The translations under genes were made by a program, and so were the position numbers. A stretch of DNA of 64,000 nt from Octopus sinensis (taxonomy: Eukaryota). The stretch's first letter is position 1. Every line of letters starts with the position of its first letter. Shown here piece after piece: positions 3,540 to 57,660 of the stretch. The notes under the pieces were generated by a model. It made no database searches. It had not been told where the DNA came from and was given only the letters and a program-made list of their open reading frames with translations. Location: contig NC_043002.1 in assembly GCF_006345805.1 (NCBI RefSeq), positions 18,538,001 to 18,602,000 on the forward strand, in the 5' to 3' direction.

Positions 3540-3800
3540 CTCGTATTTACATATATATTCGCATAGACATGTATATATATTGTTGTATTTCGGGATGGTC
3601 ATTTTGTCTTTTTTGCCAAATAAACACACGCACTATATATTTTTCTTCACTCGTTTATTACTGTTCTTATTTTATTATTTTAATTCATGTTCATTGCCCG
3701 GAAATCTTTCGTCACACATCTGTGACCTCTTCAGGTACACTTTTCTTTTTCATGTGTGTTCTTGCTCCACTTACTCCATCCTGTTCTTCTTAGAAGAACA
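3540..3800 (-). mobile_element. Short repeat with a hammerhead-like motif; second copy at ~55860-56100 (+)
   Basis: Minus strand reads CTGAAGA-g-GTCAC agatgt GTGAC-GAAA-gatttc; about 250 bp of flank is homologous to the 55.9 kb copy in the opposite orientation. Confidence 0.6.
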
Positions 3801-3904
3801 TATATGTGTGCATATGTATACGTATATATGTATGCATGTATTTATACACATGTTTGTGTGTACGTATATATAAATATATATATACATATATGCATACATA
3901 CATA

Positions 3905-4385
3905 TATACACACTGGTAGAATATTCTCATCCAAACTTCTGTCAAATGTAAACATAACAGACCGGATATTGTTGTTTGGGACAAAGTGGTAAAGGTGTGT
4001 ACCATCATAGAGGTTAACTGCCCTTCAGATATAAGTATTTGAAAATCAAAGAAAAAGAGGATATTTATGGACAACTGCTTCGAAACATCCTGCTTCTATA
4101 TCAATACTATGAATTCATATTCATACCAATAATAAATGGAGCACTAAGTTTTGTTAGCAAAAGCTTAAAGGAGAATATGAATAAACTGGGATTTTCAGAA
4201 AGAGAAACTGACCGGCTAATTCGTACATTACAAGTGCAATCTGTGAGTGGAACAGTAAAAATATGCAAGACTTTTATCAAGTTCCAAACGTGAATTTGTC
4301 TGTGTTAACTACATCCCAAAGATTGAGCCTTGTATCTTTGTTGGAAACGGGCTCCCTCCTCAGTGGAAGATTTATAATAATCAAA
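3905..4385 (+). mobile_element. 3' fragment of a restriction-like-endonuclease (RLE) non-LTR retrotransposon (R2/R4/NeSL-type)
   Basis: Disrupted frame ..RPDILLFGTKW*KVCTIIEVNCPSD..KIKEKEDIYGQLL..FIPIINGALSFV fits the RLE PD-(D/E)xK and KxxKY region. Confidence 0.7.
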
Positions 4386-4559
4386 AAATAGAAAAGACAT
4401 ACATATTTCTTGTTATACTGAGAGGCGGTGCACGGTACCAAAATTTTGGACTCGTATCAAATATATCAGACTTCCAAGTCATTGTCAAAGTATCTGCATA
4501 ATTTGTCTAATTTGTACTGGCATCGACTCGCATAAGTTGTAAAATGAAGTAAAACCAAA

Positions 4560-4770
4560 CAGTAATATTTTGAAATTATTTAGTACGTACGTTTCTAGCT
4601 TTCTTAATATACAATAAGAAATTCATCGATTACACAAAACTCCCTCAGCTTAAAGCACTTTAAAATATTTTGAAAATGCTTTAACTGAGGAAGATATACG
4701 TAATGAATGCATTTATTAAATATTGCGCAAAGCTGAAACGTACGTATCAAATGATTTCAAAATATCAACA
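4560..4770. repeat. Degenerate head-to-head inverted repeat containing two hammerhead-like motifs
   Basis: Plus arm: CTGAGGA (4685) ... GAAAC GTAC GTA (4735-4746). Minus arm: CTGAGGG ... GAAAC GTAC GTA. Axis near 4660. Confidence 0.6.
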
Positions 4771-5734
4771 AGGCAATGGTTATATTGCCTTGCTGTGTCG
4801 GCACCGGAAGTCTCTTGACGGTTTTTCATAGATACTTATATTTCCTTGTGTTTGTTACCATTATATTTCCGTTATAATTGGGTTTTGACCTTTTTTAACT
4901 AGGCTATTGAGGTTAGGTTCAAAGCAGATAGTATAAGTTTAACTTTTTCGTATCGTTGTTAGCTAGAAAGACATTTGTTATGCATTGTAGATTCTGTTTT
5001 ATCGCAAGAATATGTATGTTCTGCTTGCGTGAGAGTGTGTTTGTACGCGTGTGTGTAAATGAGTGGGTGAGTGAGTGTGTATGTACGTGCTATCTCTTTT
5101 AACTCGCGTGCTGCGTTTAAATATTTTGTTCTACGCTGTCGATGCCGTTGGATTGGATGGTACAGTTAGCTAGGTATCAAAACCATAATGATTTACAACA
5201 GATCAGCATACGATGGGCATCTATAATCGTTTAGAGAAAAATTGGTGTTATTGTGATATCTATGAGGTTGATTATCAGTTCTGGGGTTCGGTCTTGAGTG
5301 TGCACTTCAGTATATTGATAACATCAGAAACATAAATATATGCATTCATGTGTATATATATATATATATATATATATATATATATATATATATATATATA
5401 TAATAGAATAATAAAGAGAAAGTCCTTGGTACATTATTATATATATATTTGAAAGAATGAGTAGTGATGCTTTTTTTAGGGGTTAATTAGGGGATAATTT
5501 TTATTTTAATCTTAATAATTTTTAGTGGTTACTCTGAGCTTCGAACTTCAAGTAGCCTTTTTTCAAAGTCGAAAATGTATGTCTTACTGGTTACTTAAAT
5601 AGCAAAAGATTTCTATTTAAGCAAAAAGTAAAACATACATTATATATATATATATATATATATATATATATATATATATATATATATATATATATTATAT
5701 ATATATATATATATATATATATATATATATATAT

Positions 5735-54550: not shown

Positions 54551-54750
54551 TATTTATATTTTTAATACAACAATTATTTTACACACATATATCTTTCTGA
54601 AGAATTTTCTAATATTGATTTCCTGATATTAATGATAATATATTATATAAAATATACATAATCGCTCGTATTAAATGCATAAATACTTTAATAGTATTAA
54701 TACTTTAATACAATAGAGCATCAATATAAATTTAGTATATAATATTCTCA

Positions 54751-55130
54751 TCTTTATTTATAAAAGTGAAGTTGTGTGTCTGTCTCCTACGATTTAGATT
54801 CCTAACTACTCTCACATTTTGCGGTGCAGTTCAACCAAAACCGGTTATCTTATAGTCGTGATTCATATCGAGCCCTTCTGGGTATTAGCGCGCGTCTACG
54901 ATGAGTCTACGATTTTAAAAAAAATTTACCATCATTTTTTTCCATTTTAATGCATTTTTTGCTATTATATAACTCTCTAAAAATGTCTACGATGAGTCAA
55001 CGATTTAAAAAAAAAATTACCATCATTTTTTTTTCCATTTTTAATGCATTTTTTTTTTGCTATAACTCTCTAAAATGCTTATATAGTTATTTCCCTTACA
55101 AATCCGAGCAACGCCGGGCGATACTGCTAG
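54751..55130 (+). mobile_element. Non-autonomous Helitron of the same family as 25302-26148
   Basis: A|TC start, shared first ~210 bp, hairpin ccgagcaacgccggg and CTAG|T end; no helicase remnant. Confidence 0.85.
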
Positions 55131-55432
55131 TTGAATATATTTAACTAAAGATTTATTACAATAAACAAGACGAAAATATAGAAAGGACCTTGGTAAAGAA
55201 AATACAATTAGATTTAAACACAGTTGTGCTTCAGATACAGTATGCATTCACAGTCTTACACAGTTACAAACACACGCACGTAACTCGGGTTTGAATTTGA
55301 TAATGGACTTGAGAATTAAGACTGGTCTGGACTGGATTGGTAAAATACATTTGCGTACTTTAAGAAAATAGGTGAACCTATAGTAACAAAAATGAAAGGT
55401 AAGTGCCATCATTGTGACACAGCATCACTTAC

Positions 55433-55778
55433 CTTGCCACATGAATGTACTGAAGGTGAACCAAAAGCTATTCATACAATTAAAACTGCTACGTTTTTCC
55501 GAATCAACATCCACGTCCGACGCGTTTGTCCATTCATACGGACTAATTCGACCGATTATTGCCAGAAAGCTACCGGTCAGTACATAAGCTAATATGATGA
55601 AACACCAAACAGGAGTTGTGAATGGTTTTAAAACAATGAAAAGTCCACGTGTCATTTGTATCGCCTCTGGTTTTTTAATAACGATTTTATATCCAGAACT
55701 TAGAAATGGAAAAGACATATCCACATGTTTCAAACGGTCTAAAGTGAGGGTGAGTGGAGCGGCAGCAATATCAGCATG
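55433..55778 (-). CDS. iGluR/IR-like gene copy B, exon 4 (end of S1, M1, M2 pore loop)
   Basis: ttttcAG acceptor (phase 0) and CAAG|GTAAGT donor (phase 1); 346 nt: HADIAAAPLTLTLDRLKHVDMSFPFL..KPFTTPVWCFI..RISPYEW..NSFWFTFSTFMWQ(G). Confidence 0.95.
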
Positions 55779-56999
55779 CTGAAAATGAAATAATTACTAC
55801 CTTTAGAATGGAAACTAGACCAATATCTTTTGTTTTGACTTCAAAGAGGACGTTAGAGGTTATTAATTTTAAGAAAATATGAATGAGTACAGTTTCTTGT
55901 ATTTGAAACCGAAATCGCACAAGATAAGTGAAAGAAGAGAACACACGGAGACGGAAAGTGTCATTGAAGAGGTCACAGATGTGTGACGAAAGATTTCCGG
56001 ACAATGGACATGAGTTAGAATAAGAACGGTGATAAACGAGTGAAGGACAAATATAAAGTGCGTGTGTTTATTTGACCAAAAAAATATGGCCATACAACAA
56101 TATCTGTTTCAACACACGATTTCACATCAGGAATCTTGCATCTCAAATCTAAGAATTTTAATTGATTTGCTTTTCGCAGGAAGGAAAGTTTCTTGTCGAA
56201 GATAAGTCTCGCTTTTATCCTTCGAAACGTAGAGTAGGTGAAACCATAGCGACTGAAGAAGGGGTTTTTTCTTTGTGTTAATTGTCCTGTACTCTATTTT
56301 TTTGTTGTTTTTAAAAAATGTCCAGTTCCTTTGGTTTGTGTCTATGTTTTCGTTTCTCATTGTGTTCGACGTCCTTTTGGTGTCCTGTACTCATATATGC
56401 GTGTATATGTACATGTAGAGGTAGGTACGTACATATATGTTTATATATATGCATATGTTTTATTTTATTTATTAATATATATATTTCAGCTCGCCCACAC
56501 ATACATACTCACACACTCGCCCCCATTCATGCATACACACTCACACAAACCACTCTCACATACACACGCGCGCAAGAGAATACATTCGTTTGACCGGGTC
56601 ATTGTCATTATCCCACTTTCATTCAGCCTCTTTCTTCTGGCTATTTCGTCATGTTGAATCGTTAATCTCAACAAAATATATTTTACCGGCCGAATGATAT
56701 TCATGCAGTGAATGAAGACAATTAGATTCTGTCTACTGAAATAGAAGCAGGATCACTGACAACGTTTTGCTCCGTGGATTTTAAACTGTGTTAAATCATT
56801 TTGAATGTCCATAATTTTGAAGTTCATGAATTCAGCAGCCAAAACAGTTTCTTTATAATGATGTAATGTTTTCATTAATCAATTAAAGGAATCGTTAAAA
56901 ACGACCTTAATGGATTTAGACCTGTACCTCTACTGTTACTCATTTATATATATAAAGGGAAAGTTTACGAAATAAACAAAGACGAAAGCAGGTGGTGTA

Positions 57000-57660
57000 C
57001 AAACAAACAGATGTATTAGTATAGCGCTCAGGAATAGAAAAAGTATTTTACGTTTCGAGCCTACGCTCTTCTACAGAAAGGTACACAGAATAAACAAGGA
57101 GAGAAAAAAAATGTGTGTAGTAGCTAACGATCTATCATGGCGTCAGGGCTGGTGGAAGTCTGGGGAGAGGGGGTGAGGATGTGTGGGGGGGTTGTTTGGA
57201 GGGAAAGTAGAGTTAGGTGTGGGTGGGTGGAGCCTATCAGGGGGGAGAAGGGTAGTGGAGGAGTTGGGGTAGTGGCGTCGGGTATGATGGAATGGAGGAG
57301 TGAGTGAAGTTTACGAAGTTTGGTGTTGGCAAGAAATTGATGAAAGAGATGATTTAAATTAATTATATAACGCAACGTGTTGTGAGCATGGAAAGGCGGC
57401 AGAGAGGAGAAAAAGATGGAAAAAGCAGGAAGGAGAAGGCGGTCGATGGTATGTACTTTAGAGAGATTGGAGCGAATGGTGGCACACATAAGGCGGTGAG
57501 ATGTGGTACGGAGTCTGGGTAGGATGGATGAAGCAGAGTGGAGAGCGGGGTGGAAATGGAGGCGGAAACATTTAGGGATGAGGCGGTGATGTAAGCAGCG
57601 GCTGAGAAAAGAGACGTGGCTAGAGAAGCGGGGTTTTTTTTTAAAGGAGTAGAGAGAGGT
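57000..57660 (-). mobile_element. Decayed retroelement fragment ending in a family F hammerhead-like tail, possibly Penelope-like
   Basis: Pro/Leu-rich broken frame followed by CTGTAGA-A-GAGC GTAG GCTC-GAAAC-GTA at about 57077-57047; family assignment is uncertain. Confidence 0.4.

Follow-up and report, generated by a model that had tools for sequence, protein, structure and literature searches.

A stretch of 64,000 nucleotides (nt) of the Octopus sinensis genome (contig NC_043002.1, positions 18,538,001 to 18,602,000, here called the window) carries short repeats that contain hammerhead ribozyme-like motifs and commonly lie as inverted pairs. We consider these repeats to be probably, with a probability of about 0.8, insertions made by the machinery of Penelope-like elements (PLEs). 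Each would then represent the 3'-terminal, pseudo-long terminal repeat (pseudo-LTR), part of a PLE or a short derivative of one, with a PLE-type minimal type-I hammerhead on its sense strand. The hammerhead lies ~35-300 nt before the element 3' end. The repeats are sorted here into families and loci designated by the letters A to H and K to M, and the argument is carried by the orientation of the inverted pairs, by an excess of hammerhead motifs over shuffled sequence and by the continuity of family A with a decayed PLE reading frame.

Orientation of the inverted pairs

Comparing the window with itself and aligning the arms revealed same-family inverted pairs at ten sites (4.6, 9.8-10.3, 12.3-13.5, 31.2, 42.1, 44.1, 44.4-45.2, 50.7, 51.4 and 51.8 kilobases (kb)), of which the pair at 44.1 kb is an addition to the initial annotation of this DNA. 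All ten are head-to-head, with the minus-strand copy on the left, the plus-strand copy on the right, the 5' sides joined and the 3' ends facing outward, while same-family tail-to-tail pairs are absent from the window. The outward-facing arrangement described in that annotation is thereby confirmed, as is its statement that Penelope insertions often carry inverted 5' repeats, the head-to-head arrangement being a PLE signature (PMC8557442, PMC4209133). The arms are 100% identical in family B, 99% in C, 91% in A, 89% in D, ~80% in F and ~74% in L. In three pairs (42.1, 9.8-10.3 and 44.1 kb), the shorter arm is cut off before or inside the ribozyme, leaving a single hammerhead in each.

Excess of hammerhead motifs over chance

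The window has a GC content of 36% and is rich in repeats and microsatellites. The box CTGANGA occurs 44 times, versus 24.6 ± 4.6 in block dinucleotide shuffles. When all boxes were listed with their context, several were found to be followed 10-45 nt on by GAAAC, then by a short palindrome, and then by U and a non-G base. A relaxed type-I descriptor gave seven matches in four unrelated families, with 0.33 ± 0.55 expected and a maximum of 2 in 300 block-wise dinucleotide shuffles, and a strict descriptor with a palindromic helix III gave six matches in three families (A, B and C), with 0.05 expected and a maximum of 1 in 200 shuffles. The match rate, which the initial annotation had proposed to set against shuffled AT-rich sequence, is thus well above it with either descriptor. 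In addition, the 15.2-16.2 pair is C-G (GAAAC...GUH) in families A-F and K, a feature demanded by none of the descriptors and one that yields the natural GUH cleavage triplet. Another strict descriptor, the first to be used, required a helix III loop of at least 3 nt and had zero matches; it was dropped as an unsuitable test, since PLE hammerheads lack a helix III loop. In metazoan PLE hammerheads, helix III consists of one or two pairs or of a loop-less palindrome (Cervera & de la Pena 2014, PMC4209133).

The top matches of the Rfam scan were microsatellites and palindromes resembling microRNA precursors. For example, the palindromes at 31186-31379 and 50673-50804 reach as much as 104 bits with Rfam models of plant microRNA precursors, which is under the gathering thresholds. 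Palindromes of such origin are likely a source of false microRNA calls in cephalopod genomes. A degenerate pattern of the family A hammerhead had no matches in JGI metagenomes.

Family A is the terminal repeat of a Penelope-like element

A decayed, 5'-truncated PLE reading frame lies on the plus strand at 5800-7507. It comprises a reverse transcriptase (RT) fragment at 6344-6619 (RVT_1, E=1.4e-4), a further fragment at 6821-7207 that is 59% identical to P0002, and a segment from 7191 that reads IPCSCGRLYKGETCRPLKVRVEEHRKYV, the GIY-YIG-like endonuclease motif of PLEs. Directly downstream of this frame is a family A copy (7529-7790, plus strand), consisting of a tRNA-like head, a degenerate A/T-rich spacer ((AAT)n in other copies) and a hammerhead at 7688-7729 with the sequence CUGAUGA-A-GGCUG..CAGCC-GAAAC-GU-U.

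Using the endonuclease segment as a query returned 92 short proteins, nearly all from one ENA assembly, and two of which are NCBI entries. Eleven external loci (L001-L011) were taken from ENA sample ERZ21867824, which is filed as a metagenome assembly but has contigs of 0.2-0.7 Mb and is probably, for the most part, a cephalopod genome; the sampled loci have ~36% GC, as does the window. This sample holds many copies of a PLE whose DNA is 75-88% identical to the window element, the window frame being 75-88% identical to locus L001. The junction between the end of the window frame and the start of family A is likewise homologous to the 3' untranslated region of L001 (score 35 versus 21 ± 2.4 in shuffles). 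In L002, L003, L004 and L011, the family A hammerhead is located ~300 nt past the endonuclease stop codon and is preceded by the tRNA-like segment, and the family A module is found at the corresponding position in L008 and L009 as well. Family A is continuous with the PLE frame both in the window and in the external loci, and it is therefore the terminal repeat of the PLE. The initial annotation had recognised the motifs as PLE-type minimal hammerheads with a palindromic stem III, which agrees both with the published class (PMC4209133) and with the link between family A and a PLE frame. Its description of the elements as non-autonomous is not borne out for most families; family A is a terminal module belonging to the PLE itself, and a good number of copies may simply be PLE ends truncated on their 5' side.

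The external loci further display the insertion anatomy seen in the window. A head-to-head inverted, 5'-truncated partner is present in L003, L008 and L009, while in L007 a short fragment on the minus strand lies upstream; tail-to-tail partners are absent from these loci. A 35-nt 3' extension in L002, L004 and L011, missing in L003, corresponds to the PLE "tail". Across 13 family A-type copies, helix II is 98.5% paired and helix I consists of 3 conserved pairs. Helix II shows one compensatory change (U-A in the window copies, C-G in others) and several positions with one-sided G-U changes, and being a single event, the compensatory change lends modest support to this helix. As to the encoded protein, RVT_1 is also found in L003, whose RT matches group-II-intron-like (6.5e-6), telomerase (0.003) and other prokaryote-type RTs in the PDB; these E-values are weak, and no LINE (long interspersed nuclear element) RT is among the matches. 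By eye, the GIY-YIG-like motif VYSIPCSCGKIYKGETGRPLKVRLEEH is recognisable in the window and in 29 aligned copies. On the minus strand of L006 (2745-2800), next to a microsatellite and immediately before a 5'-truncated PLE copy, there is another minimal-hammerhead-like motif, CUGAUGA..GAAAC-UCAG-UC, distinct from that of family A; its helix III resembles that of window family C.

Repeat families and their hammerhead cores

Minimal hammerheads in PLE terminal repeats are marked by an extra nucleotide after A9, a G10.1-C11.1 pair and a palindromic 15.2-16.2 region (PMC4209133). At least eight hammerhead families had been proposed for the window, and the number of credible ones is about six: families A, B and C match the strict descriptor, D matches the relaxed one, and E and F have both boxes. 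Each of these six has at least one copy in which CUGANGA and GAAA, the two catalytic boxes, follow one another in type-I order and the cleavage site has UH. K, with its U6, lacks this combination, as do G and also L and M, whose U3-A8-type box is damaged. The palindromes formed by 15.2-16.2 and helix III read ACGU, ACGUACGU, ACUCAGAGU, ACAUGCAUGU, ACUCAAGAGU and ACCGGU, all with C15.2-G16.2.

Family A (7.7, 42.2-42.4 and 44.4-45.2 kb) matches the published minimal hammerhead throughout, with CUGAUGA, one extra A, GGCUG/CAGCC with G10.1-C11.1, GAAAC-GU-U and a helix I of 3-5 base pairs (bp). Besides the copy beside the PLE frame, it forms two pairs. At 42105-42418, a minus copy reduced to its last ~60 nt (42105-42167) is joined to a plus copy (42164-42418) at the latter's 5' end; the core of this plus copy is mutated to CUGCUGA. 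At 44410-45181, a full minus copy (44410-44740, hammerhead at 44487-44532) is accompanied by a 5'-truncated plus copy (44932-45181) with the core CAUGAAGA, the arms being ~91% identical. The minimum-energy fold of the minus copy at 44410-44740 is the hammerhead fold. Predictions for dimers with RNAcofold were mixed, as family A adopts the hammerhead fold, B and the solo D copy (D2) pair via the palindrome, and F does not adopt a hammerhead fold; these results are counted as evidence for family A alone.

Families B and C both have the two boxes, a helix I of 4 bp, a palindromic helix III and a helix II that opens with a mismatch. Family B is a compound insertion at 12269-13478, bounded by (TA)n tracts and composed of a minus copy at 12269-12722 (unit positions 1-454), a second minus copy at 12729-12929 (unit positions 353-550) and a full plus copy at 12928-13478. 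The two minus copies form a partial tandem on their strand and abut the full plus copy. The hammerheads are located at 12462-12513 (minus) and 13137-13188 (plus). The family B unit is ~550 nt long, is taken to have no reading frame, and has a defined 5' end that is used twice; an exact-protein look-up of one open frame in family B returned no record. Family C is a palindrome at 31184-31481, with arms at 31184-31283 (minus) and 31284-31383 (plus) and hammerheads at 31217-31254 (minus) and 31313-31350 (plus). In B, C and D, the helices are 4 and 2-3 bp long.

Family D (10.0 and 29.0 kb) has G10.1-C11.1 after one extra nucleotide and an additional unpaired A before G12. Its pair at 9819-10280 is bounded by (TA)n tracts and joins a minus copy (9819-10172, hammerhead at 10036-10074) to a 5'-truncated plus copy (10173-10280), in which the truncation point lies downstream of the ribozyme, leaving this arm without one. 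D2 (28956-29205, plus) is truncated at its 5' end just before the hammerhead-like motif at 28965-29005, where helix III is ACAUGCAUGU. Family E (31.5 and 44.1 kb) has both boxes and a palindromic helix III, with irregular or poor helices I and II. It comprises a solo plus copy, E1 (31489-31563), with a hammerhead-like motif at 31493-31533 (CUGACGA..GAAAC-UCAAGAG-UA; irregular helix II), and a pair, E2 (44082-44207), made of a partial minus arm (44082-44117) and a plus arm (44133-44207) with a hammerhead-like motif at 44137-44177. The E2 arms align with a score of 44, versus 18 ± 3.5 in shuffles, and the minus arm ends within helix III. Family F (4.6 kb) also has both boxes and a palindromic helix III, its helices I and II being weak; the pair spans 4565-4765, with arms at 4565-4661 (minus, CUGAGGGA) and 4673-4765 (plus, CUGAGGA..GAAAC-GUACGU-A).

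Hammerhead-like motifs are indeed present at the sites named in the initial annotation, and in excess of chance, although several individual sites do not carry an intact hammerhead. Family K (51.0, 52.1 and 57.0 kb, all minus) has the complete minimal layout, CUGUUGA-A-GAGC..GCUC-GAAAC-GU-A in the copy at 50941-51075, but its three copies all have U at position 6, an invariant position; the other two lie at 52025-52170 and 56945-57092, and the 3' end of the first adjoins (TA)n. Loci L (51.4 kb) and M (51.8 kb), with GAAACCGGU and a UUGAUAA-type box, are damaged in every arm and surface only with a descriptor that has 0.38 background matches. Their box recalls the U3-A8 variant of Schistosoma PLEs. 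The L pair (51321-51594; arms 51321-51456 and 51464-51594) combines a UUGAUAA or UUGAUAU box with GAAACCGGUA into a weak hammerhead, and the M pair (51622-51974; arms 51622-51799 and 51806-51974) combines a UUGAUAA or UUGAUAC box with GAAACCGGU, a different core position being damaged in each arm. Locus H (50.7 kb) is a palindrome at 50680-50870 laid out like family C, with arms at 50680-50737 and 50738-50795 and a tail on one side, ending at 50870. Both boxes are present, but for want of helix I it was rejected as a folded hammerhead. G (3734; 3.7 kb) was likewise rejected, having neither helix III nor helix I and reading UUGAAGA in its second copy, and the CTGAAGA boxes at 51702 and 51907 were discarded for their wrong orientation and absent GAAA partner.

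One-sided tails and (TA)n targets

The plus copies of B, C and H have an extra 75-96 nt at the 3' end that the outer inverted copy does not have. In family B, the tail measures 96 nt (13382-13478) and is confined to the plus end, missing at the outer minus-strand end. In family C, a one-sided tail of ~75-95 nt starts at 31384 and is followed by (TA)n. The family C tail is also found alone at 63003-63075. An inverted repeat at 62794-62834/63135-63175 (41-68 nt, 97% identical) encloses three (TA)n tracts together with two short inserts, this solo tail being one of them. Overall, (TA)n adjoins at least 12 of the 26 element 3' ends, compared with 1.2 ± 1.1 expected at random positions.

The tRNA-like head of family A

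The tRNA-like heads of family A lie at 7529-7610, 42164-42240 and 44665-44740. Within the window, a pattern of A-box and B-box at tRNA spacing, composed after the sequences had been seen, matches only these three heads (0.1 expected). Outside the window, it matches the heads of family A type in L002 and L007, and L007 has one more match on the minus strand. ARAGORN made no call in the window, the loci or the head consensus at the default or 80% threshold and only three low-quality calls at 70%, and Rfam searches for tRNAs were negative too, the whole window and four sub-windows yielding none even at E<=10. Most of the external heads in L002-L011, that of L002 excepted, have an insertion of ~18-20 nt after the anticodon-loop-like CCCTAAGC, which the window copies do not have. 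Two short family A copies begin exactly at the tRNA-like segment (42164 and ~44740), and such starts would, as a lead, fit RNA polymerase III (pol III) transcripts.

In the library of papers searched, none describes a tRNA-like A/B-box segment for PLEs, and this module at the start of family A is possibly new, the only such detail here. One may speculate, with considerable doubt, that octopods harbour a PLE lineage whose terminal repeat opens with a tRNA-derived pol III A/B-box segment, ~170 nt upstream of its minimal hammerhead, and that the short copies are pol III-transcribed short interspersed nuclear elements (SINEs) copied by PLE enzymes. If so, this would constitute a partnership between SINEs and PLEs with PLE-style head-to-head insertions and extend the SINE concept to PLE partners. 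PLEs are active in octopus genomes, where unclassified SINE families also number in the hundreds (PMC13282606); more broadly, many of these families could then be PLE-dependent. A functional head would also bear on the proposal of a 2026 preprint, so far vertebrate-only and with invertebrates outside its scope, that hammerhead-bearing non-autonomous elements of vertebrates derive from PLE terminal repeats (10.64898/2026.07.22.740005). A different tRNA-like SINE is present as two full-length copies (40051-40381 and 40540-40870) that are 98% identical and head-to-head, with a 158-nt AT-rich spacer between them; it has no hammerhead boxes, and further copies lie at 15387-15686 and 20431-20730.

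Proposed mechanism of insertion

Among the features described for canonical PLE insertions are truncation on the 5' side, partly tandem copies, a second, inverted copy that is 5'-truncated and sits at the 5' end, a tail on one side only and a bias for microsatellites including (TA)n (Craig 2021, PMC8557442). In vitro, both strands of the DNA are cut and extended by a PLE protein, which begins reverse transcription at two internal positions as far apart as the tail is long; it also helps a hammerhead that is otherwise inactive and that insertion does not require (Frangieh 2024, PMC11167929). By analogy with this biochemistry, two-strand priming may be proposed for the window. The PLE endonuclease would cut AT-rich or (TA)n DNA, and each cut strand could then serve as a primer for copying the element RNA into cDNA, starting close to the 3' end of that RNA. 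The two cDNAs would grow toward one another and be joined at their variably truncated 5' ends, so that the left copy would be minus and the right one plus. Priming from both strands would thus give head-to-head copies with outward 3' ends, and two alternative RT start sites would leave a tail at one end only. The observed head-to-head geometry agrees with the two-strand nicking and extension by the PLE protein in vitro. As an origin of the inverted pairs, twin priming was weighed and discarded, since it would invert a different upstream segment, whereas both arms here duplicate the same 3' region.

The hammerhead would belong to the element RNA and act only where two sense copies meet, as in tandem or multimeric transcripts, probably with the help of protein. 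Dual minimal hammerheads on opposite strands, 100-700 bp apart, have been described previously (Cervera 2014, PMC4209133). The two ribozymes of a pair are on opposite strands, so no transcript contains two sense copies, and the notion that the inverted pairs serve ribozyme dimerisation is ruled out. The inverted pair is an integration by-product, or scar, rather than a working ribozyme dimer, and a read-through transcript of it would form a long hairpin instead.

Weighing the evidence and alternative explanations

Several observations weigh against insertion by PLE machinery. The descriptors were tuned post hoc on data already seen, which leaves the exact probabilities soft, while the excess itself is judged beyond doubt. 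The Rfam hammerhead models (Hammerhead_1 and relatives) match nothing at the gathering threshold or at E<=10, either in the whole window or in four sub-windows of ~300-400 nt on the best candidates. However, the same models also miss the PLE-attached hammerhead of external locus L004, so that this negative says little. Of the families, A and K alone show in full the published hallmark, a G10.1-C11.1 pair that follows one extra nucleotide, and helix II of B, C and E begins with a U.U or A.A mismatch. The GIY-YIG assignment is read from a by-eye motif, with Pfam, NCBIfam and PDB profile searches negative, and the AlphaFold model of the endonuclease has a predicted local distance difference test (pLDDT) score of 51, too poor for a fold search. 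Families B-M match nothing in 71 kb of external loci. The initial annotation envisaged Penelope mobilisation through one shared mechanism; this stands for family A, which is tied to a PLE frame, whereas no frame is linked to B-M, for which shared anatomy suggests mobilisation by PLEs. Moreover, the copies of family A, the sole PLE-linked family, lie outside (TA)n, which makes more than one partner element likely, and the window tails of 75-96 nt exceed the published 30-40 bp.

Among the alternatives, the elements may be non-LTR retrozymes, i.e., short hammerhead units that multiply via tandem transcripts, self-cleavage and circular RNA and use PLE enzymes only for integration. The ~550-nt unit of family B, devoid of a reading frame, with its twice-used 5' end and partial tandem, would suit such elements, and a 2026 preprint argues that vertebrate non-LTR retrozymes themselves derive from PLE terminal repeats (10.64898/2026.07.22.740005). 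Yet a repeat survey and self-BLAST of the 64-kb window found no head-to-tail arrays of 150-400-nt hammerhead monomers, the family B tandem being the only, partial, one. Together with the physical inclusion of family A in a PLE and the resemblance of most copies to 5'-truncated ends, this makes the retrozyme explanation unlikely, and the label "retrozyme-like" in the initial annotation is not upheld. Less probable still, families B-M could be SINEs of a microsatellite-targeting LINE (e.g., of the R4/Dong clade, active in octopus), with pairs formed by twin priming and an incidental likeness to hammerheads. In favour are the strong (TA)n association, the lack of a PLE frame linked to B-M and the abundance of Dong-R4 elements in O. 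vulgaris (PMC13282606). The repeats lack poly(A) or LINE-type tails, however, and their one-sided tails, their tandem-plus-inverted structures and the hammerhead at the same relative position are PLE traits (PMC8557442).

Two further explanations have very little to recommend them. Several pairs are near-perfect palindromes with TA-rich flanks, as would be expected of miniature inverted-repeat transposable elements (MITEs) or foldback DNA transposons with terminal inverted repeats at TA, whose hammerhead-like strings would have arisen by chance in AT-rich sequence; mariner-type fragments in the window and the lack of an Rfam hammerhead would fit as well. This is highly improbable given the large motif excess over shuffles and the continuity of family A with an RT frame. 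It also sits poorly with the solo one-armed copies of variable 5' truncation (D2, E1, the family A copy at 7529-7790, the K copies and the 63 kb tail), with arms that are often unequal and enclose extra central sequence (D, A, E2), and with the partial tandem in B. Just as remote is the idea that the palindromes of B and C are long-read assembly artefacts. Their arm identity of 99-100% and the difficulty that such structures pose to assemblers (Craig 2021, PMC8557442) speak for it, whereas pairs of the same geometry have diverged to 74-91% identity, the geometry recurs in another assembly, and the third internal copy in B is not expected from a simple fold-back. Insertion by PLE machinery is thus the explanation that we prefer.

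Genomic setting and significance

Exon-like open reading frames of ionotropic glutamate receptors, all on the minus strand, are found at 49277-50068, 55428-55793, 57691-57957 and 229-561. The Lig_chan domain was identified at 49.3-50.0 kb; judged by eye, the frames at 57.7 and 0.2-0.6 kb hold S1-like ligand-binding segments and the one at 55.4-55.8 kb an M1-M2-like membrane segment. The best match of these frames is 86% identical to an Octopus bimaculoides protein, in keeping with the octopus origin given in the initial annotation. With these frames around them, the hammerhead elements probably lie within introns of one or two tandem glutamate receptor genes. Other mobile elements in the window include a LINE-type RT frame with frameshifts at 45770-48240 (plus; RVT_1, E=2.5e-26), which is unrelated to the PLE, a Pif1 helicase 2B domain at 25551-26072 (plus), probably a Helitron remnant, and a Mos1-type helix-turn-helix at 11147-11546 (plus), a mariner remnant.

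The window offers a sequence-level example from a cephalopod of how PLE integration shapes a repeat-rich genome, in which short palindromic insertions, each with a relic ribozyme, accumulate in (TA)n tracts within apparent glutamate-receptor introns. Since the Rfam models are blind to this class of minimal hammerhead, standard annotation pipelines overlook it.

Comparison with known systems

The Sm-alpha elements of Schistosoma, SINE-like repeats described by Ferbeyre in 1998, reportedly carry hammerheads of the canonical type that cleave in vitro. Family A resembles them in being a short dispersed repeat that joins pol III A/B boxes to a hammerhead, the tRNA nature of its head not being confirmed by ARAGORN or Rfam. 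Non-LTR retrozymes (Cervera & de la Pena 2020, PMC7229834; Li et al. 2026 preprint) resemble the window elements in being short noncoding units with a type-I hammerhead that are proposed to depend on PLEs. Retrozymes differ in forming head-to-tail arrays with loop-loop contacts and circular RNA (PMC7229834), whereas the copies here are dispersed or inverted and their ribozymes minimal.

Among the closest systems are the minimal hammerheads of PLEs (PMC4209133). Like these, the window motifs have CUGANGA and GAAA boxes, their helix I is short, and their helix III is tiny or palindromic, which implies action as a dimer; families A and K also share the extra nucleotide after A9 and G10.1-C11.1. 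Also shared are the location in terminal repeats, the many heterogeneous families per genome and the opposite-strand pairs 100-700 bp apart. Unlike the published examples, helix II is 2-5 bp here rather than 6-8 bp and opens with a mismatch in B, C and E, the host is a cephalopod, and the ribozymes are known from sequence alone. Compared with canonical endonuclease-containing (EN+) PLE insertions (PMC8557442, PMC11167929), the window elements have longer tails (75-96 nt versus 30-40 bp), are mostly noncoding units of 100-550 nt and include, in family A, a tRNA-like head. Like those insertions, they are 5'-truncated, include partial tandems, can have an inverted, 5'-truncated copy joined to the 5' end and a tail on one side, target AT-rich sequence or (TA)n, and carry their hammerhead ahead of the site where reverse transcription starts. 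Every insertion and ribozyme feature observed here has been described for PLEs before, and the window is a fresh example of a known phenomenon.

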